A stretch of DNA of 64,000 nt, taken from positions 79,732,001-79,796,000 of the forward strand of contig OZ296648.1 of assembly GCA_965655095.1 (NCBI GenBank), read 5' to 3'. Positions 3,950 to 25,094 of this stretch are shown piece after piece; the first letter of the stretch is position 1, and every line of letters begins with the position of its first letter. A model generated the notes under the pieces. That model searched no databases. It was not told where the DNA came from and saw only the letters and a program-made list of their open reading frames with translations. Origin of the DNA: Haplodiscus bocki (taxonomy: Eukaryota). Made by a program: the position numbers and the translations under genes.

Positions 3950-6900
3950 TGATTGATCATACGACATAAATATCACTTTCCTTTTGATGGTCTTTAAGAT
4001 AAAGGCATTTATAAAACTCTTCAACTCTTCAAATGATATATTATTTTAAACTGGTTTTGTAAAGCCTTTCGAAGTAGTTTCACTAACATCATCACAGTTA
4101 CAAGAGTGTGCTTTACTGCTCAAGCAAACAAGTTCGTCTAAACAATTGCTTCCGGTGTTTCTAGTTTATGTTGAACCTGGACCTTTTTTTTTATTTCTAA
4201 GAGAAGAATGCTTCTCGTTCAAAATACTGAAATTGAATTGATCTCTCGGACTTGTTCAATTCGTTAAAAATATCTGTAGTCCTTACACTCGAAAGAAAGT
4301 TTTCTGTATCTATGTAGAATATTTGTTTGTTATCTGGTCAAAAAAATGGTCGAAACATATCATAATATGTTTCATACAATTGGAACTTACTTAGCCCTAA
4401 CATGGTGTACTCTCATTTAAATGAAATATTCATCTCAATTTCAGTTTGCTGCATCAAATAACTATTGTATGCATCATTAGAAGTTTGAAGTTCATCAAAA
4501 ATTAATTGAAAATGGCGTGTAATCTTTTTTTTTCTCTGTTTTTTCAAGAAAATTTTAATAAAACCCCATCTCTAACAAATTCCATTATTTACCAAAAAAG
4601 CAAAGAACCATGTTTTTAGGTAAATCTTCCTCTAATTCAATTGCCGCAAAAACTCTTTTTTCATTATCAAAATCTAAAAAACGTTTCAACCAATGTTTTT
4701 ATTTCAAAGACACTATAACTTGTGTTTTTTCCACAATCATACCATGTCTCAAAAAAAATTCAAATTCCAAAAAAATGCTAAATAGTTTTTCCATACAATT
4801 CAAATTTCCGTTTTGTGTAAATGATTAAGGTTTTAATTTGTTTATATATTCAGTAAATTTATCTTGAGAACGTTTTTTTTCGTGGCAAAAGGGTAATTAT
4901 CTTGATTTCGCTCCCATTTTTTCTGCTTATTTTGAATCAACTTCAAGAAAAAAACCAACTTCACTATTGGTTGACTTCTTTAAAAATACATCTAAATTAG
5001 TAGCATTGTCAAACACAAAAACCATATAAGGTGAAGTCATTGCACAACCATAAAAAATATTTGCACGTGTATGTTCGATCTTTGTATTTTCATCTGATTT
5101 AAAATATCTACTGCCCATGACAGCTGAAAATCGAATAGAGTTACTCCTTCTTAATAGTAGCATATCTTTTTCGTAAGAATTCTGTAAATTTTGTTTTGTA
5201 TGTTTCAAGCCACATTGCACAGTATATCCAGGAAGAGGAACAAAATGAAATGGATTATTGCCATTCCCTTTCTAGGACAATTTGATAAGTTTCTCAAAAC
5301 ATTCTCCTAAGAGAATACCAACATTTTTAACATAAATGTGGATCAATTTTTCTGCCAGCGATTAATTAAAAAAGTTTAATAAATGCTTTTCTTCGCTCAA
5401 TTTCCGCAATTGCTGGTTAAGGTTGTGATAAGTTGTTATGATAATCAACTCCTGTTGAATTGCAAAGCGGTTTCTCATAATTTTTGTGTATTAAAATATT
5501 CATATGCAAAGGCTGTTTTTGTATGTATCAAACTCCAATGCTCAGGAGAACTTGTTTTTCAAATTTTGAAAGTCACTTTTTTGTAATGTATCAACCAGTT
5601 TTTGTAAACTACTATGAAGGAATCTGAAACTGTCTAAGAGTTTTATATAACTATATGTAGGGAAAAAAATATCTCTCTAGTTTTTGGTATGACCTTAACC
5701 ATTTTTTCTTCCCAAACAATTAAAATTCTGAAAAGTAGATGGCAATCATAATATCAAAATTACTAAACTATTGTATCATAACCGGTAAAAAACAGCTTTT
5801 GTATTTCTTAACTTGTAGATTACAAATCTCATGAGAAGGTCGTCTTTACTTACCACTTAGATGACAATGGTCCGTAACTTCTACACCGTTTTCTGAATCA
5901 ATTTCTCTTCCACAAAGCCAGCATGTACTGGTGTTTTTGAATGATCAGCATCATCCTCACTCATCAATTTTTTCATAATTTCCTCATCAGTATTTTTTAA
6001 AATAGCACATCACCTTACTTTTTAGCCTAATTATTTCATCCACAACCCATTTAACAATAATTTCTTCAAATGGTGCTCTATAGTTACCAAATTTAAGGTC
6101 ATCGTCTAAATCATTCACAATATAACCAGTACAATCGGGATTTTGGTTATAATTGACTATAGTTTTAACCCCAACTTCATTGGCATTTGGAGTACCAAGT
6201 TTTTTTATTCTTTTACACTCGAAACCTGCATAAATTCTAAAACATATTGGTGTTTTGTAAAAAGAACATTTCCCATTTAGATAGTTCTTTTAAGGTAGTT
6301 TATTAGATGCTACTTCAATTCTGTCACTCATTATTCTTGCTTTTATACAACTTCTTGAGATGAAAAAAACTTTTACACCTTCGACAATTAACGCCTTACC
6401 CCCTAATACCAATACATCTATAAATTTTTCCAATAAAGATTTTTTGATTTCAATATAAAATTAAATAAACAACACCATTTTCTGTCGCGGTATAAAAAAC
6501 ACTATTCTAAAGTGATGAGAATTTACAGTCCTCAATGATAGTTTGTGTGGCTCCAAAAATTGGTTTTTCGACCGGTGTGAAAATAATAAAAAGTCAACTT
6601 TATTTCTGAACTTTTTTTACCTCGCGGCATTCAAAAAGTTGCCAAAATCAAAGTTATTTGAGTTCAACTCACTTAAAAGTGTTACATCATTAGATACCTT
6701 TCTAAAAATTCTATTTAATGGAAGAAAGTGAGCTAAAGTAGACCATCAGAAGCACATGTTGTTCAAAATTCAATGATGCAGATGTAAAATAAAACATTGA
6801 TTTAACATACGTTCCTTCTCTTCTGAATTCTTCATTTTTGTAAAATTATTTTATCAATGGAACTCGCTTATTATACACCCACCCAGGTTCTCCTACTTCA

Positions 6901-8900: not shown

Positions 8901-11749
8901 CAATAAAAATCGCAATTCAATGTAGATTATAACATTTTTTATTGGAGGAGCCAGCGTGACTCGTTGAGTCCACATTTGACAATATTGGAACAAGTATTCA
9001 TGGAGGTGTCCTTGAAAACTATCTGCCAGCCACCATAACTTTTCAATAAATTCAATCAAGGAAAAACAGAATTCAGTGGCTTACTTTTCAATTTCGTTTT
9101 TTCAATTTCATAACTTTCGTACTCCATTGGGCGTCAAGAAATTCTTTATGAAAAAGTAAAAAACATTGACGCTCACTTGAATATGCAGGCACACTTTTGT
9201 GTACTATCAGTGATGAATTTTGAATTGGTGAAGAGGAAAAGTGGTGATTTTTTAATTAGTGGATACACAGTTTTGTTAATATAAGGTGCATGTGTTTTTG
9301 TAACATTTTTTCTCAATTCTTTGTCCGCATAATATTTTACGTTCTATGTGGTATGCAAATAAGGTACGTTTAATATGAAACGTCCTACTTCTGATATGAA
9401 TTACATGTGTTTTTTTTTGAGATAATAATTACAGGAAACGTCTTAAATCTGATGTTAATTAGATAAAAAAAGGCGAAAGCCGTTTTTTCTCTTAATCACA
9501 AAAATAGGTTTTTCCGGTGTTAATTACAGAAAAATATTCAAATTATGGTTGTAAATCATATCATAGATTAACGTCGTCTTTTCTGATATGAAAGGCATAT
9601 TTATACACAACACTCGTTCTCAATAACCAAGAGAACTTATAATAACAACCAAAGATTTTTTTTAAATTTCGAGATTATGGAACGAACTGGGATTCTTTCT
9701 CTTTCGGTCCCTCCTTGTCAGTCGAACAATCTGACACCGATCCATTACAAAATTTCACCACTTCATTTTCACAAGCGCCAAATAATTTCCACTTCGATTC
9801 ATGACAATGACTCAAATAACCCAAAAAAATATCATGTCTCCAGCTGGTGCAATCGGCACTAATGTTTCCAATATTTCACTCCGATAATCGTCTCCTCATG
9901 TTCTACGTAAGTCTGAACCAAAACAAGCTAATTACTTTCTTGAACTGGAACCTAAAACATGCCAACCGAATTCCCATCACTTCACAAATTCTTAACATTT
10001 GACCTTTTTGAAAACTCTGCAGGAACTGAACTTTATTTCTGTCTTCAAATTTGAGAAGGAATAAAAAACACCGCTTCTCAAGAAAATCAGGGGTAAACCC
10101 AGGGGATAATTTTCACATGATTTGCCTTGTGAGTTTGGATCAAAAAATTTAACAATTTTTCAAAACTGAGCTTTTGTAAACAGTCAAAATTTTCAAAATA
10201 GGTGAGTATTTTCAACCCGCTTCCTAATTTTGCTTAATTTAGATAGTAACCAGAAAACAACTTACCCAAACTCCCGCATTCTGAGAGAGCCAATGCAATC
10301 CGACAAAAAATATCATCCTAAAAATATTTCTGTGTTTCATGATATTTTTCCAAGGGTTTTCAACAATCACATTTTGATCCCCAAACAACTGCACCAAGAA
10401 GAACGCAATTTCTGTAGTTTTCCTCCAGAGCAACAACTGAAATATTTGCAGCACCCTGTTTAGTATTCGACAAACCTCACCTTGGTCACTATATCGATCT
10501 AACTGTTGCCGATTATTCCTCCATAGTTCAATACAACCCATACTCAGTGGCACTCTTCTAAATGCCGACCGTGACTTGTCACCCTGATTCATATTGATAT
10601 TGAAGACGACTCGTCACTAAATGTTCTTCACTCTCTTCCATTGATGATATCAACAAAATTCCACCGGCAAAAAACTCAGAAATTGACAAAACGTTCACCT
10701 CAAATATTTGTCACTTGAAGTGTGACCTCTGATAATCTATGGTGTCAAATGTGTGGTGTAACCCATATGAAAAAATTAACCACTCATTTTTGCCGTGGTT
10801 TCAAACATTTTGTGCTCATTTGATGTAGAAGGTGTTTTTCAATTCAAAAAATTTAAGTAAAATCTTCTCGACTTTTATATCTTGCTTCCTGAATTATTCC
10901 TTCTTTGTGAGGGGCACTGGAGGGGCTAGTGCTTTTCTTTCAAAACTGCGAACTTCCCGCAAAATATTACAATGGTCCTGAAGTTTAAACTTTGGTTCAC
11001 GTCATTTACTCTGAAGAAAATTGCTTGGTTGAAATTGAAGCGTAGGTCAAACATGCCCGAAATTCAACAACGTCGAAATGTGAAGTCAACATAGCAATGG
11101 ATATTTCTCTCTTTCAATGGCAACAACAATGTCAATGTTCATTGTGGAGTTTCGCTAACCTAGTGAAGTTTCAAGAAAGAAAAGCTGGAAAGAGGACACC
11201 AAGAAGAAGAGTCGCGTCACTAGTGTGTACGAGCTCCTGCTCAGTTGAAAAAGTCCATTCGTTTCAGAAATCTTATTCTGACACCTGGAAAAGACATCTT
11301 AACATACCTCCACGAAAGTGTAACTCACCATGAAAAACTGTAAATCAAAACGAACACAAAAAGTGAAACCAATATGAAATTCTTAGTTAACGCTCGTTCC
11401 AATTTTCGATCCCTATTCGAGAGCCCAAGGCATTTCTTTGAAACACGGGCGGTGTGCTATATTTTGCATTCCGTTTTTGATTGTAAAAATACTGTAAATT
11501 AGAGATTTGTTTCTGCATTTCTCAGAAGACGTTTGCTTCTGCCGATATCAATATTTCTCTTTACTGTACCTGCCTTTTTGACGGTATATATCCGTTTTGA
11601 TATCTCCCCAGAAGATCGACGATTAAGGAACTATAGAGTTTCATGAGACTAAGTCCGATTTTTTAAAAAGTGCTTTAGAGCAAACTAAGCAATTCCACAA
11701 CAAAAGCTTCATTGTTTAAAAAGCTCCCAATCGAAAAAAAATTCTTTAT

Positions 11750-15466: not shown

Positions 15467-15615
15467 NNNNNNNNNNNNNNNNNNNNNNNNNNNNNNNNNN
15501 NNNNNNNNNNNNNNNNNNNNNNNNNNNNNNNNNNNNNNNNNNNNNNNNNNNNNNNNNNNNNNNNNNNNNNNNNNNNNNNNNNNNNNNNNNNNNNNNNNNN
15601 NNNNNNNNNNNNNNN
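15467..15615. other. Assembly gap (149 N)
   Basis: Run of N. Confidence 1.
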
Positions 15616-18600: not shown

Positions 18601-19509
18601 ACCTAGCAGCTACTCTAAGCTAGGAATGAATATTTTGTTACGTGCGCATTACGTCGCTACCGATCTGGTGACGTCACAAAACTTTCAACCAATCCGCTGT
18701 GCTTTTACGCTTTTTCACTTTGGACGGACACGGGACGTCTACGTAGCCACCAGAATCATTCTCCTCAGTAGTACTGCGGAAGGCAGTGCTACAAGCGGCT
18801 ACGTAGTCGCCACGGAACGCTCTGGCCAAAGTGAGGCGTGAGCTAGTAAAAACGTGGAACGGGCTAGGAAAAAGCCTAGTTTCGTTCCAAAACTGGACTA
18901 AATCGATGCAATAGTATTACCAAGCATGTAATTATGATATTCTATGATTATTTTAGTGTATTTTACTTAATTTTGGTGCATTTTCCAATACTTTCCTCAT
19001 ATGGAAAATCTTTTTGATCATTTGTTTATGTTATTATTTATTGTGTCGGCGCGGGAATAAGCACTTTGATATCCATTTCCGACTGATGAGACCCGTAAAT
19101 TTTCCGTCGAAAGATGGAAAAGACGCGGTCTATAAAGGAAGAAATGGAGGGAAAGTTGTTTATTTCCCGCCAGAGTCGGCATATTTTCTTTGTAATTACT
19201 ATGATTAAAGTACTTTTCCGTACTTTGTACCTTTACTTGGCGTGTAAACAATTATGTTTCCCGCCAAGGAAAAGGTATAAATAGGAGAAACGAAAAAACT
19301 AAAGGGAGATCCTTAATATCACTTTGATTATCAGTTGACTGTACTGATTGCGACTAGTTGTTTCTTTTAAAGATTCACATTTTTGCTATACTCTCAAGTT
19401 TAATAACAAATACAAAACTAGAAAATGGCACTCGGAGAGCGCAGATCCCGCGAAAGCCCTTAATCTTTCCCTCGCCAAACAAACAAACAAACAGACAAAC
19501 AAAAAATTT

Positions 19510-19583
19510 TGGCCACACAGAGGTTCGAACTCTCGACCCTAGCGTTTTTAGCACAATTCTCTTACCGACTGAGCTATAGGGCC
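19510..19583 (-). tRNA. tRNA-like gene or pseudogene, AAA anticodon, first array copy
   Basis: 74 nt with A box TAGCTCAGTCGG, B box GTTCGAAC and downstream oligo-T. It has a few stem mismatches. Confidence 0.45.
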
Positions 19584-20086
19584 GTACTAATCTGATTACT
19601 AATATCAGATTACTATTATCAGATTAACAAGAATTTTTGGCCACACAGAGGTTCGAACTCTCGACCGTCGCATTTTTAGCACAAGGCTCTTACCGACTGA
19701 GTTATTGGGCCGTACTAGTGTGATTACTCTTATCCGATTACTAATGTCAGATTACTATTATCCTGGATATGATTGAAATCCTGATCCAATCAGGATCTCC
19801 GGATAACTGTTATCAGGATCCAACATGAAATCCTGGACCGTAACCCAGTCGTTGATATACAATACCTCCTATTTTGAGAAATCCTGCTAACAAACAAACA
19901 AACGAACAAACAAACAAACAAACAAACAGACAAACAAAAAATTTTGGACACACAGAGTTTCGAACTGTCGACCCTCGCGTTTTTAGCACAATGCTCTTAC
20001 CGACTGAGCTATAGGGCCGTACGCATGTGATTACTAATATCAGATTACTATTATAAGATTACTATTATCAGATTAACAAAATCTTT

Positions 20087-20160
20087 TGCCCACACAGAGG
20101 TTCGATCTCTCGACCGTCGCGTTATTAGCACAATGCTTTTACCGACTGAGCTATTGGGCC
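20087..20160 (-). pseudogene. tRNA-Ile(AAT) pseudogene copy in array
   Basis: The only copy with loop CT-AAT-AA (GTGCTAATAACGCG, the canonical Ile-AAT arm). Its B box is mutated to GATCGAAC. Confidence 0.65.
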
Positions 20161-21079
20161 GTACTAATGTGATTACTCTTATCAGACTACTATTGTCAGA
20201 TTACTATTATCCTCGATCTGATTGAAATCCTGATACAATCAGGATATCTGGATAACTGTTATCAGGATCCAACATGAAATCCTGGACCGTAACCCAGTCG
20301 TTGATATACAATACCTCCTATTTTGAGAAATTCTGCTAACAAACAAACAAACCAACAAACAAACAAATAAACAGACAAACAAAAAATTTTGGCCACACAG
20401 AGTTTCGAACTCTCGACCCTCGCGTTTTTCGCACAATGCTCTTACCGACTGAGGTATAGGTCCGTACTTATCTGATTACTAATATCAGATTACTATTATC
20501 AGATTACTAATATTAATTTAACAAAAAATTTTGACCACACAGAGATTCGAACTCTCGACCGTCGCGTTTTTAGCACAATGCTCTTACCGACTGAGCTAGA
20601 GGGCCGTAAGCATCTGATTAATCTTATCAGATTACTATTATCAGATTATTTTTATCAAATTAACAAAAAATTTTGGCCACAGAGAGGTTCGAACTCTCAA
20701 CCCTCGCGTTTTTAGCACAATGCTCTTACCGACTGAGCTAGAGGGCCGTACGCATCTGATTACTCTTATCAGATTACTATTGTCAGATTACTATTATCCT
20801 GGATCTGATTGAAATCCTGATCCAAAAATCCGACCAGTAGTTCATGGGAAACAGTTATCCGGATCTCAGATCCGGATTTCATTTCGGATCACGCCCAACT
20901 TTGAACTCCGTCTTCCTATGATCATTACCTCCCTACTCACCAAATTTCGTCAAAATCCGACCAGTAGTTTATGAGAAATCCTGCTAACAAACAAACAAAC
21001 AAACAGACAAACAGACACACGAAGGTGATTGCAATATCCCGCTTTTCGCGGGATAATGATCAATAAATAATAACATAAA

Positions 21080-23493
21080 AAAATGGCACTCGGAGAGTGC
21101 AGATCCCGCGAAAGCCCTTGATCTTTTCCTCGCCAAACAAACAAACAGACAAACAAAAAAATTTGGCCACACAGAGGTTCGAACTCTCGACCCTCGCATT
21201 TTTAGCACAATGCTTTTACGGACTGAGCTATAGGACCTTTGTAATCTGATTACTCTTATCGGATTACTATTGTCAGATTACTATTATCCTGGATCTGATT
21301 GAAATTCTGATCCAATCAGGATCTCCGGATAACTGTTATCAGGATCCAACAGGATGACCTGGATCGTAACCCAGTCGTTGATATCCATTACCTCCTTTTT
21401 TTGAGAAATCCTGCCAACAAACAAACAAACAAACAGACAAACAAAAAAGTTTTGCCACACAGAGGTTCGAACTCTCGACCTTCGCCTTGTTAGCACAATG
21501 CTCTTACCGACTGAGCTATAGGGCCGTAATTATCTGATCACTATTATCAGATTACTATTATCAGATTACTATTATCAGATTACAATTATCAGATTACCGA
21601 AAAATTTTGGCCACACAGAGGTTCGAAATCTCGACCTTCGCGTTTTTAGCACAATGCTCTTACCGACTGAGCTATAGGGCCGTACTTATCTGATTACTCT
21701 TATCAGATTACTATTATCAGACTACTATTTTCCTGGATCTGATTGAAATCCTGATCTAATCAGTATCTCCGGATAACTGTTATCAGGATCCAACAGGATA
21801 TCCTGGATCGTAACCAAGTCGTTGATATACATTACCTCCTATTTTGAGAAATCCTGCTAACAAACAAACAAACAAACAAACAGACAAACAAAAAATTTTT
21901 GCCACACAGGGGTCCGAACTCTCGACCTTCGCGTTTTTAGCACAATGCTCTTACCGACTGAGCTATAGTGCCGTAATTATCTAATTACTCATCAGATTAC
22001 TATTATCAGATTACTATTATCAGATTACTATTATCAGATTACTATTATCAGATTACCGAAAAATTTTGGCTACACAGAGGTTCGAAATCTCGACCTTCGC
22101 GTTTCTAGCACAATGCTCTTACCGACTGAGCTATATGGCCGTACTTATCTGATTACTCTTATCAGATTACTATTATCAGACTACTATGTTCCTGGATCTG
22201 ATTGAAATCCTGATCTAATCAGGATCTCCGGATAACTGTTAATATGGATCCAACAGGATATCCTGGATCGTAACCAAGTCATTGATGTACATTACCTCCT
22301 ATTTTGAGAAGTCCTGCTAACAAACAAACAAACAAACAAACAAACGAACAGACAAACAAAACATTTTGTCCACACAGAGGTTCCAACTCTCGACGTTCGC
22401 GTTTTTAGCACAATGTTCTTAACGACTGAGCTATAGGGCTGTACTCATCAGATTTTTCTAATCAGATTGTTTTTATCAGATTACTGTAATCAGATTACTA
22501 TTATCAGATTACTATTAGCAGATTAAAATAAAATTTTGGTCACACAGGGGTTCGCACTCTCAACCCTTGCGTTTTTAGCACAATTCTCTTAACGCCTGAG
22601 CTATTGGGCCGTACTCATCTCATTACTCTTATCAGATTACTATTTTCCTGGATCTGATTGAAATCCTGATCCAATCAGCATCTCCGGATAACTGTTATCA
22701 GGATCCAACAGGATATCCTGGATCGTAACCCAGTCATTGATATACATTACCTTCTATTTTGAGAAATCCTGCAAACAAACAAACAAACAAACAAACAAAC
22801 AAACAAACAGACAATCAAAAACATTCGTCCACACAGAGGTTCCAGCTCTCGTCCCTCGCTTTTTTAGCACAATGCTCTTACCGACTGAGCTAGAGGGCCG
22901 TACTCATCTGATTACTCTTATCAGATTCCTATTATCAGATTTTTATTATCAAATTAACAAAAAACTTTGGCCACACAGATGTTTGAACTCTCGACCCTCG
23001 CGTTTTTAGCACAATGCTCTTACCGACTGAGCTGTGGCGCCGTACGTATCTGATTACTAATATCAGATTACTATTATCAGATTACTATTATCAGATTAAC
23101 AAAAAATTTTGGCCACACAGAGGTTCGAACTCTCGACCCTCGCGTTTTTAGCACAATGCTCTTACCGACTGAGCTATACGGCCGTACTGCTCTGCTTACT
23201 CTTATCAGATTAGTATTATCAGATTACTATTATCCAGGATCTGATTGAAATCTTGATCCAAAAATCCGACCAGTAGTTCATGAGAAACAGTTATCCGGAT
23301 CTCAGATCCGGATTTCAATTCGGATCACGCCCAACTTTGAACTCCGTCTTCCTATGATCATTACCTCCCTACTCACCAAATTTCGTCAAAATCCGACCAG
23401 TAGTTTATGAGAAATCCTGCTAACAAACAAACAAACAAACAGACAAACAGACACACGAAGGTGATCGCAATATCCCGCTTTTCGCGGGATAAT
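21080..23493 (+). mobile_element. Helentron-type non-autonomous element, copy 2, carrying 10 tRNA-derived units
   Basis: Same termini as copy 1 (AAATGGCACTCGGAGAGTGCAGATCCCGCGAAAG; hairpin at 23471-23491), arranged head-to-tail with copy 1. Confidence 0.75.
23110..23183 (-). tRNA. tRNA-like gene, Ile(AAT)-type body with AAA anticodon (best-folding copy)
   Basis: Acceptor GGCCGTA/TGTGGCC, D arm GCTC/GAGC, anticodon stem TTGTG/CGCGA with loop CT-AAA-AA, T arm GAGAG-TTCGAAC-CTCTG (one mismatch), A73. A and B boxes are intact and a T6 run follows. Function is unproven. Confidence 0.55.
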
Positions 23494-23534
23494 AATTCAG
23501 TCTTCATAACTGCGTAGCATTTTCCCTTCAAAAA

Positions 23535-25094
23535 ATGGCAACGCTGAGAAACAAACGAAAGTTGGCAGCCGTTAAAAGAGAAACACAAGAGGAACATCCT
23601 AGGAACGGCCAGTCACGAAACACGTCCGTTCCTAGAATTAACGAGGAATATATCACACAACTTTCTGAAGAGATAGAAGGCAGAGTCAGTAAAAAACTGT
23701 CCCAAGAGTTCAGCAGGACAAAGTCCCGCATTTTGGGTGCTTTGTCTAAATTAGACGAGTTTCTCTTGAACCAACAGATAACGACGCATTCCGGAACCAG
23801 TCCGGGAACATTCCGAAACACAAACGTGGATAACCAGGGAACGAATGAGGACGACTGCATGAGTGACCCTTATCCTGAAGCAGGCCTCTTCCGCAGTCAG
23901 ACTACACAAAACTCTGGCCAAGAAGTTGGTCCCTACATGGTGACAGGAGTTATAGAAGAGACTCACGACGGTCCTTACATGGTGAAGGGAGTTATAGAAG
24001 AGATTCACGACGGTCCTTACATGGTGACAGGAGCTACAGAAGAAGTTCGCAATGGCCGTGACATGGTGACAGCAGTTCAAGAAGAGATTCCCTACTGCTC
24101 CTCTGGAATTTCCTCAGGAAAACAAAAGAAGGCGCGCTCCACAAGTCAGCCACAATTTCGCAGTGAGAACACCCCTGCGACAATTGAAGCCGACCAGATT
24201 TTGTTGGCCCTTCAGCAATTGGCGATGAACAGTAATTCAGCCAATTTCAACAACAATATCACAAAAATCTCGAAACTGCCTAAGTCCCTCACGACAACAA
24301 TGCCCACATTCGACGGGAAATCAGAGAAATTTGAACTGTTTGAAGATCTATTCCAAACGAGTTTAAAAATCCACAATCAGCTAACAGAAGAAGACAAAAT
24401 ATACTATTTCCACTCTCTCATGCGTGGTGATGCGCTGCAGATGTTTAAAAACATCACCAGCCCCAACAGAGAGAATTTGGGAGAAATCCTGACTGTGTTC
24501 CGTATAAAATACGTGAAACACCAGTCAATGGCTACGGCAAAACCCAAATTTCAACAACTAATATTCAATCCAGTGAACAAGAAGTTAATTGAGTTTTTGG
24601 ACGAACTCCAGAAATTGGCAAAAGATGCGTTCGGAGTTGCTGCCCAAGCAATCATTGACCAATTCATATATGCCAAGATGCCTCCACACCTGGAGAAATC
24701 AATAAACCAGGCCCACTTGGAGAACGGCACGTTTGAACAGATTGTGACACATCTCGAAAGGGAATTAGAGCTTAACAGTTTGGAATATCCTGATGAAACT
24801 CAGATGAACACTGTGACGCACAAACAACAAATTGAAGGCAACCCAGATAATGCTGGAAATATCAACAGTGATACAATCGACTCTAACCCGAACAACCAAA
24901 AAATTAACAAAAAATCTAGAACTCTCTACTCTCCCTGTGAGACATGTGGCAAAACGAACCACTCCACAGAGAGATGTTACGTTGGAGCCAATGCAGCAAA
25001 CAGGCCACTTCCCTGGAAGAACAAACCTCAAGAACAGGACGCACACGACAGTATAACTGGTTGTGTCCAGGCTACAGCTCAACATCTTAACTAG
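23535..25094 (+). CDS. gag: Retrotransposon Gag-like protein (519 aa)
   Basis: The only long intact ORF. Has a capsid-like segment (MPTFDGKSEKFELFEDLF...KIYYFHSLMRGDAL), a CX2CX4HX4C knuckle (CETCGKTNHSTERC) and internal 14-aa repeats. Confidence 0.9.
   Translation: MATLRNKRKLAAVKRETQEEHPRNGQSRNTSVPRINEEYITQLSEEIEGRVSKKLSQEFSRTKSRILGALSKLDEFLLNQQITTHSGTSPGTFRNTNVDNQGTNEDDCMSDPYPEAGLFRSQTTQNSGQEVGPYMVTGVIEETHDGPYMVKGVIEEIHDGPYMVTGATEEVRNGRDMVTAVQEEIPYCSSGISSGKQKKARSTSQPQFRSENTPATIEADQILLALQQLAMNSNSANFNNNITKISKLPKSLTTTMPTFDGKSEKFELFEDLFQTSLKIHNQLTEEDKIYYFHSLMRGDALQMFKNITSPNRENLGEILTVFRIKYVKHQSMATAKPKFQQLIFNPVNKKLIEFLDELQKLAKDAFGVAAQAIIDQFIYAKMPPHLEKSINQAHLENGTFEQIVTHLERELELNSLEYPDETQMNTVTHKQQIEGNPDNAGNINSDTIDSNPNNQKINKKSRTLYSPCETCGKTNHSTERCYVGANAANRPLPWKNKPQEQDAHDSITGCVQATAQHLN

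Follow-up and report, generated by a model that had tools for sequence, protein, structure and literature searches.

The 64,000-nt window examined here (Haplodiscus bocki, contig OZ296648.1, positions 79,732,001-79,796,000, forward strand) carries a composite repeat at 19418-23492. A 74-nt tRNA-like sequence is present in it 17 times, always on the minus strand. Within the window the repeat family is confined to this stretch. Judged by its sequence organization, the family probably represents non-autonomous rolling-circle transposons of the Helentron or Helitron-like-2 type (HINE-like), in which the central tandem repeat is a tRNA-derived RNA polymerase III (Pol III) cassette. A preliminary description of the stretch had recognised two head-to-tail elements with 7 and 10 tRNA-like units at 19417-23493. 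The layout is confirmed and the stretch was correctly placed, while its exact bounds are set to 19418-23492 by empty sites. The elements and their ends are as follows.

19418-23492, minus strand: whole insertion of 4,075 bp, two head-to-tail non-autonomous elements in one site within the 5' leader of a retroelement
19418-21056, minus strand: element E1, 7 units, the downstream copy in standard orientation
19418-19474, minus strand: standard 3' end of E1, with TTTCGCGGGAT (19445-19455), the hairpin GCGCTC-TCC-GAGTGC (19428-19442), CATTTT and CTAG (19418-21)
21020-21056, minus strand: standard 5' end of E1, TTATCCCGCGAAA-A-GCGGGAT, the 5' subterminal repeat with its complementary repeat, hairpin-forming
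21057-21074, no strand: inter-element spacer (TGATCAATAAATAATAAC), 18 nt
21075-23492, minus strand: element E2, 10 units, the upstream copy in standard orientation, with the variant 3' end ...CCATTTTTTTAT, which has no CTAG
21075-21137, minus strand: standard 3' end of E2, with the subterminal repeat at 21103-21113 and a perfect 6-bp hairpin at 21086-21100
23456-23492, minus strand: standard 5' end of E2, with hairpin arms at 23471-23478 and 23484-23491 and the subterminal repeat at 23480-23490

Two uninterrupted paralogous copies of the host retroelement (L045 and L046) preserve the empty site, with ACAAAA to the left of the insertion point and TAATTCAG to its right. The longer reading is ...CAAGTT(G/T)ATTAAC(G/A)A(A/G)TACAAAA, then the insertion point, then TAA(A/T)TCAGTCTTCATAACTGCG.... 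Its standard-strand sequence is GAATTATTTTG; in the filled site this T run is interrupted by the element, with two T left on each side, a pattern also described for HINEs. It follows that the insertion comprises 19418-23492, that both elements occupy one site, and that there is no target-site duplication, as had been proposed beforehand. This empty-site comparison concerns one insertion site, and TT on both sides is also found in other copies. Contig joints in four public runs (X1, X2, X5 and X10) skip the whole stretch (19417>23494, 19416>23493 and 19415>23491), and in the same runs loose contig ends at 19417 and 23493 run into the opposite flank. A 2-bp TA target duplication, considered from the contig joints, was rejected by the L045 and L046 empty sites. 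A chimeric empty-site query had no match in the first ten fetched loci; the empty sites came from gag paralogues.

In standard orientation an element begins with 5'-TT-ATCCCGCGAAA, A and GCGGGAT, followed by 22 nt, a (GTTT)n microsatellite and a 190-bp core module, Z. The middle is a series of n repeats of a 14-bp minisatellite, a 74-nt tRNA-like gene and T4-7, and the 3' part consists of (GTTT)n, 21 nt, TTTCGCGGGAT, a 6-bp hairpin, CATTTT and CTAG-3'. Since this layout lies on the minus strand, the tRNA-like genes are co-directional (sense) with the element. The ends of E1 and E2 are 94-98% alike. The subterminal inverted repeat noted in the preliminary description is borne out, with ATCCCGCGAAA present exactly four times, once near each element end (plus strand 19445 and 21103; inverted, on the minus strand, 21044 and 23480). 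The same description spoke of a terminal stem-loop. A terminal hairpin is indeed present (TATCCCGC-TTTTC-GCGGGATA, -10 kcal/mol, z = -3.9), but it is made of the 5' subterminal repeat and its complementary repeat, and the real 3' end is a second hairpin, at the opposite end (19428-19442 and 21086-21100), with CTAG. Folding of the hairpins is significantly better than that of shuffles.

These ends are shared by copies elsewhere in the genome. All 29 of the 5' ends across the fetched loci read TTATCCCGCGAAAAGCGGGAT (in longer form N, the element boundary and then TTATCCCGCGAAAAGCGGGATATTGC), and seven of nine 3' ends read TTTCGCGGGAT-CT-GC(G/A)CTC-TCC-GAGTGC-CATTTT-CTAG, then TT. The 3' end sequence of the element is TTTCGCGGGATCTGCGCTCTCCGAGTGCCATTTTCTAG, and the E1-type 3' end is identical in L035, L037, L038, L039, L042 and L044. 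The 18-nt spacer between E1 and E2 matches the consensus host flank, taken from loose contig ends, at 15 of 18 positions and the local flank at 10-11 of 18; it may be flank brought along from another copy. A simple recent tandem duplication was rejected as the origin of the pair, given that the connectors differ diagnostically between E1 and E2 and the spacer fits the local flank poorly. The idea that the altered 3' end of E2 is a private mutation forcing read-through is weakened by L040, which has the same variant.

The terminal architecture had been likened to that of HINE/DINE-1 elements, and the layout fits the published HINE definition (PMC4067079, PMC7492417). Seven structural hallmarks of HINEs are present. 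The subterminal inverted repeats form a perfect 11-bp pair (ATCCCGCGAAA / TTTCGCGGGAT), where about 11-13 bp is expected, in both elements and all fetched copies. Next to the 5' subterminal repeat lies the complementary repeat, which gives ATCCCGCGAAA-A-GCGGGAT an 8-bp stem, and the left-flank microsatellite, (GTTT)n / (TGTTTGTC), starts 22 nt past the 5' hairpin. The central tandem repeats vary among copies (1, 2, 5, 7, 9, 10 and at least 28 units), a short palindrome comes after the 3' subterminal repeat at the 3' end, and the target is T-rich (TT) and not duplicated. A canonical Helitron (Helitron-like 1) would share CTAG and the hairpin, but the 5' end here is TTATCC, not TC, and subterminal inverted repeats are present. 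A cut-and-paste miniature inverted-repeat element, of which the coral CMITEs and their TTAA sites are an example (PMC2872659), was rejected since terminal inverted repeats and TTAA are both absent.

Dispersed copies were retrieved with a 64-residue stop-free translation of one unit (window 23054-23245) against a protein collection. Only stop-free pieces served as queries, and a pseudo-protein spanning TGA stops was excluded. The search returned 26 gene-caller 'proteins' translated from repeat copies; they are spread over more than 20 different long contigs, all from a single ENA assembly. Non-coding repeats enter protein databases via such gene calls, and the dispersed copies thereby became retrievable. 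At the window's own locus in the same assembly (L034, identical and so no independent check of array length), a 176-residue gene-caller 'protein' runs across four in-frame TGA codons within the element (L034:5445-5975, window 22979-23509). Contigs that map onto the 4.3-kb stretch number 11,711 in run X1 and 8,981 in run X2. Ten other loci of the assembly bear the family with 1, 2, 5, 9, 10 or at least 28 units and the same ends; they include the following.

L043: complete 1-unit copy of 467 bp
L039: complete 2-unit copy
L044: two complete 2-unit copies in opposite orientations (5179-5775 and 8986-9587), 3.2 kb apart
L042: complete 5-unit copy linked to another copy in which one end is missing
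L037 and L040: one complete 9-unit copy each
L038: complete 10-unit copy
L036: at least 28 units, the array reaching the edge of the fetched stretch
L035 (1-10294) and L041 (1-6279): long one-way trains of short units, each a tRNA-like unit, core and 5' end

The flanks of all complete copies are mutually unrelated. With the empty sites and the same ends around tRNA-like units at ten or more other loci, the mobility claimed in the preliminary description is upheld, and its own proposed check, a search for the termini at dispersed loci around tRNA units, found them recurring. The two L044 copies are 99.7% alike over the terminal 300 nt compared, which suggests very recent activity or an inverted duplication. 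L037 and L038, with 9 and 10 units, have near-identical arrays that agree in higher-order layout and whose last units, heavily mutated, are identical; their similarity ends at the termini, indicating that multi-unit arrays moved as cargo. The arrays in the window were inherited and not built in place. The proposal that a tRNA gene was captured and amplified into 17-copy arrays is corrected on this point: multi-unit arrays of the same higher-order layout occur at other loci, and construction did not take place at this one. All multi-unit copies except L040 finish with three units and then the core.

Inner copies of the trains in L035, L041 and L042 lack the standard 3' end, and every train junction reads tRNA, T6-7, GTTTG and then, across the junction, TTATCCCGCG. 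The L035 and L041 trains could be a nascent satellite, or could have formed as elements inserted into their own T-rich tail. Several copies have integrase and reverse-transcriptase genes as neighbours (L036:6526-6912, L037:9667-10171, L040:7270-8861), and the family is often located in or next to other transposons. In metagenome contigs the hairpin ATCCCGCTTTTCGCGGGAT was found at 33 loci, none with another part of the element, and these are chance matches. Viral and prokaryotic genome contigs scanned for a 26-nt core motif gave 0 matches.

The tRNA-like units of the window share the core GGTTCGAACTCTCGACC, which is found 17 times (at most 3 mismatches), all within 19522-23138, against a chance expectation of 0.05; the occurrences divide as 7 + 10 between the two elements. 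The modules of the array are as follows.

19510-20747, minus strand: E1 tRNA-like units u1-u7, starting at 19510, 19638, 19945, 20087, 20390, 20532 and 20674, 74 nt each, with oligo-T after each
21164-23183, minus strand: E2 tRNA-like units u8-u17, starting at 21164, 21452, 21608, 21899, 22067, 22367, 22537, 22826, 22968 and 23110
20798-20987, minus strand: core module Z of E1, 190 bp, non-repeated, adjoining the 5' microsatellite in standard orientation
23234-23423, minus strand: core module Z of E2, 190 bp
19762-19890, 20211-20339, 21288-21417, 21732-21860, 22191-22320 and 22647-22775, minus strand: six copies of connector module C, a shortened paralogue of Z
21991-22056, no strand: example of the 14-bp minisatellite (ATCAGATTACTATT)n between units
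23422-23453, no strand: (AAAC)n/(GTTT)n microsatellite adjoining the standard 5' end
19476-19505, 19889-19938, 20338-20383, 20986-21017, 21416-21445, 21859-21892, 22319-22360 and 22772-22819: equivalent (AAAC)n tracts

Between units lies the 14-bp minisatellite, whose copy number gives periods of 128, 142, 156 or about 170 bp from unit to unit. Groups of 1-3 units are linked by the 129-bp connector C and an (AAAC)n tract into a higher-order repeat of about 445-459 bp. C and Z have in common the first 25 nt, an internal AAC(A/T)GTTATC(C/A)GGATC block and the last 30 nt or so. The internal microsatellites resemble the post-Z tract at their start and the tract ahead of the first unit at their finish.

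All 17 units are mutually distinct in sequence. With the Rfam tRNA model 11 of them reach the gathering score (30.5-52 bits) and 15 have E <= 1, the best being 23110-23183 (52 bits); ARAGORN calls eight as tRNAs. Each unit ends in ...TGGCCA with no encoded CCA, followed by about three A and then oligo-T. A run of at least 4 T lies 3-5 nt from the 3' end in 16/17 units, and 13/17 have at least 5 T. The family's A box is kept in 11/17 units and its B box in 6/17, and both are unchanged in 4/17. The oligo-T runs, the (AAAC)n tracts and the intact A and B boxes in many units had all been reported from the letters, and all are found.

In other respects the units resemble pseudogenes. Two stem mismatches, C5/U68 and G49/G65, are built into the family consensus. 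As anticodon, AAA is present in 14/17 window units and in 35 of 37 ARAGORN calls at other loci; AAA is not a normal eukaryotic anticodon, Phe being read by GAA. Compensatory change is seen in none of the 21 stem pairs among the 17 units, and the paired fraction equals that of the shuffled control. Neither a selected cloverleaf nor a standard anticodon is thus found. Within the window the units are 88.9% alike, as against 92.0% for the non-tRNA connectors. Among ten dispersed copies the core-adjacent unit is the least conserved module (90.3%), compared with 94.6% for core Z and 94.6% and 97.9% for the ends. The ends are best conserved and the units least, pointing to selection that acts on the ends, as the parts required for movement, rather than on the cargo. 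Faster decay of the CpG-rich unit may also simply account for this. We infer that the tRNA-like units are pseudogene-like, decaying cargo and not working tRNA genes.

It is possible that the units are instead functional cargo, that is, active Pol III genes or TFIIIC sites spread by the element as insulators or small-RNA sources or as an aid to the element itself, for example by maintaining open chromatin or by providing a T-rich landing pad, but this seems unlikely. The consensus does have canonical A- and B-box positions and an oligo-T terminator, and the terminator is retained in nearly every unit and both boxes in four. A unit occurs in every fetched copy, even the shortest (L043), and each train junction falls directly after a terminator and GTTTG. 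The presence of a unit in every copy is biased, however, since the unit itself was the search query, and the lowest conservation among the modules, the lack of compensatory change, the two stem mismatches and the AAA anticodon all argue the other way. No RNA run on record contains the sequence either, though such runs would miss short RNAs. The insulator or small-RNA role suggested in the preliminary description is not supported on the same grounds. A broader version holds that the cassette is adaptive for the element: live Pol III/TFIIIC sites would be spread as boundary or small-RNA loci, and the oligo-T and (GTTT)n tail would be a preferred landing site for the element's own one-way trains, seeding tRNA-derived satellites. 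This too is doubtful. On present evidence the family would be a transposon with unusual cargo, and a role beyond that is not supported.

Several points weigh against the reading of the family as HINE-like rolling-circle elements with a decayed tRNA-derived cassette. The rolling-circle assignment is a structural one throughout. No Rep/helicase partner appears in the gene tables of the window or of about 110 kb of fetched loci. A 3' CTAG with a 5' TT is closer to a 'proto-Helentron' than to typical Helentrons, and the CTAG-less 3' end of E2 recurs in L040. The copies all come from one assembly and were found with a tRNA-like-unit query, which copies without a unit would escape, and array lengths are those of the assembly. 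Presumably the unit body and anticodon arm resemble tRNA-Ile(AAU), with the anticodon changed to AAA. Some units may also still bind TFIIIC or be transcribed.

The missing partner and the E2/L040 subfamily would also suit a mobile element that is not of the rolling-circle type, moved by a tyrosine recombinase or an unknown transposase and only convergently similar to HINEs. This is very improbable, since the inverted repeats are subterminal rather than terminal, the complementary repeat adjoins the 5' subterminal repeat, and the 3' hairpin lies 6 nt ahead of CTAG. The unduplicated T-run target and the one-way trains with 3'-truncated inner copies argue against it as well.

There is scarcely any chance that the repeat is no transposon at all but a local satellite, segmental duplication or assembly artefact whose 'termini' belong to a long repeat unit: the single location in the window, the long one-way arrays at L035, L036 and L041 and the identical, non-independent second assembly record (L034) would fit, but the paralogues have precise empty sites, the copies lie in unrelated flanks with similarity stopping exactly at the ends, and 17 units that all differ are unlike collapsed or duplicated assembly errors. 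An RNA-copied, tRNA-derived short interspersed element (SINE) can be set aside almost completely, as the preliminary description had done; the tRNA-like Pol III promoter and simple-repeat tracts are reminiscent of one, but the terminator right after each unit keeps the remaining element out of a Pol III transcript, the units are internal and multimeric, and the ends have neither a target-site duplication nor a 3' tail.

For the HINE-like family, an origin can be proposed in which a genomic tRNA gene was captured at the DNA level along with its terminator. The lack of an encoded CCA and the oligo-T beginning 3 nt past the discriminator base suggest that the source was a gene with its terminator and not a mature tRNA. 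A Rep/helicase element able to recognise the conserved ends would mobilise the family in trans. Slippage in the 14-bp minisatellite and unequal exchange may both alter unit number. The arrays could have grown in three layers: 14-bp steps in the minisatellite, duplication of blocks of microsatellite, units and connector, and head-to-tail copies. Neighbouring blocks within one element are the most alike. The higher-order repeat of about 445 bp (microsatellite, 2 units, connector C) may derive from head-to-tail copies fused via their two microsatellites, a proposal made because C is a shortened paralogue of Z. The hybrid internal microsatellites are the expected product of recombination between the two microsatellites of such a pair. 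E1 and E2 may represent the unfused stage, and would have either moved as one unit or arisen by end-to-end insertion.

The family has much in common with HINE/DINE-1 elements (Thomas et al. 2014, PMC4067079; Yang & Barbash 2008, PMC2374699). Both have a left-part microsatellite, a variable central tandem repeat and a short 3' stem-loop, together with subterminal inverted repeats of 11-13 bp, the 5' one of which adjoins a complementary repeat, and both insert into T-rich (TT) targets without duplication, lack coding capacity and reach high copy number. They differ in that the central repeat here is a recognisable tRNA-derived Pol III cassette with a terminator, the 3' end is CTAG and microsatellites lie on both sides. 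The papers that define HINEs (PMC4067079, PMC7492417) never mention tRNA, and DINE-1 is explicitly said to lack a Pol III promoter or tRNA similarity (PMC2374699). No published rolling-circle element with tRNA-derived central repeats was found in literature searches, Repbase being outside their scope, in agreement with the earlier statement that no description of this combination was known.

The Pacific oyster element Cg_HINE (Vojvoda Zeljko et al. 2020, PMC7492417) has the same left flank of subterminal repeat, complementary repeat and 4-nt microsatellite, and the same right flank of subterminal repeat and palindrome. It also transports short satellite-like arrays in a fixed orientation, inserts into other transposons and in some copies has two arrays. 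The oyster monomers are ordinary satellites (Cg170 and others), whereas the monomer here is a tRNA-like gene and the higher-order arrays are built with a shortened copy of the element's own core. Tandem Helitrons (PMC7492417) likewise form trains whose inner copies miss the 3' end, as in L035, L041 and L042. The proto-Helentron of Phytophthora infestans and canonical Helitrons (PMC4067079) share the 5' TT and 3' CTAG, as well as a hairpin lying a few bases short of the 3' end, but they have no such subterminal inverted repeats and insert between A and T. The T-run target and subterminal repeats here fit Helentrons, and the canonical 5' TC is absent.

Tandem tRNA units are known from other settings. 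In an Arabidopsis tRNA-Cys cluster they coincide with Helitron-annotated sequence, and the authors discuss rolling-circle tRNA capture, but in that case Helitron-finding tools made no reliable prediction and mobility was not demonstrated (PMC10701932). The family described here has defined ends, empty sites and dispersed copies, and its units are pseudogene-like. The tRNA-derived satellites Xenopus satellite 1 and Hydromantes Hy/Pol III also have a tandem monomer from a tRNA-related Pol III unit, but they have been traced to SINE-like retroelements (PMC9659126), while the carrier here is a rolling-circle-type DNA element.

It is established that rolling-circle transposons capture host-gene fragments and that HINEs transport and disperse short satellite arrays. 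Both themes come together in a HINE family with a complete Pol III tRNA-type gene and terminator as its repeated cargo. The ends, empty sites and dispersed copies document a probable case of tRNA-gene capture and multiplication, which was still hypothetical in a 2023 paper, and they outline a concrete route at the DNA level by which one tRNA gene can become tRNA-derived tandem arrays and satellites. The family also explains part of the inflated tRNA-like counts that tRNA finders will give in the host genome. If a minority of units bind TFIIIC, it would be a natural experiment on mobile elements scattering Pol III sites.

Elsewhere in the window a run of 149 N lies at 15467-15615 (gap or masked). 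The retroelement that hosts the insertion is represented as follows.

23493-25094, plus strand: 5' leader and gag-like open reading frame (ORF; DUF1759) of the host retroelement, with the ORF itself at 23535-25094 and the leader's left part at 19298-19417

No pol ORF is found downstream of the gag-like ORF within the window. The insertion lies 42 bp upstream of the ATG of the gag-like ORF. More than 2,600 proteins are related to this ORF at E <= 1e-30, indicating a very high-copy retroelement. A 42-bp tandem repeat of 3.8 copies lies inside the ORF at 23928-24087, and the length variants of the gag-like relatives (491-567 aa) may reflect this repeat.

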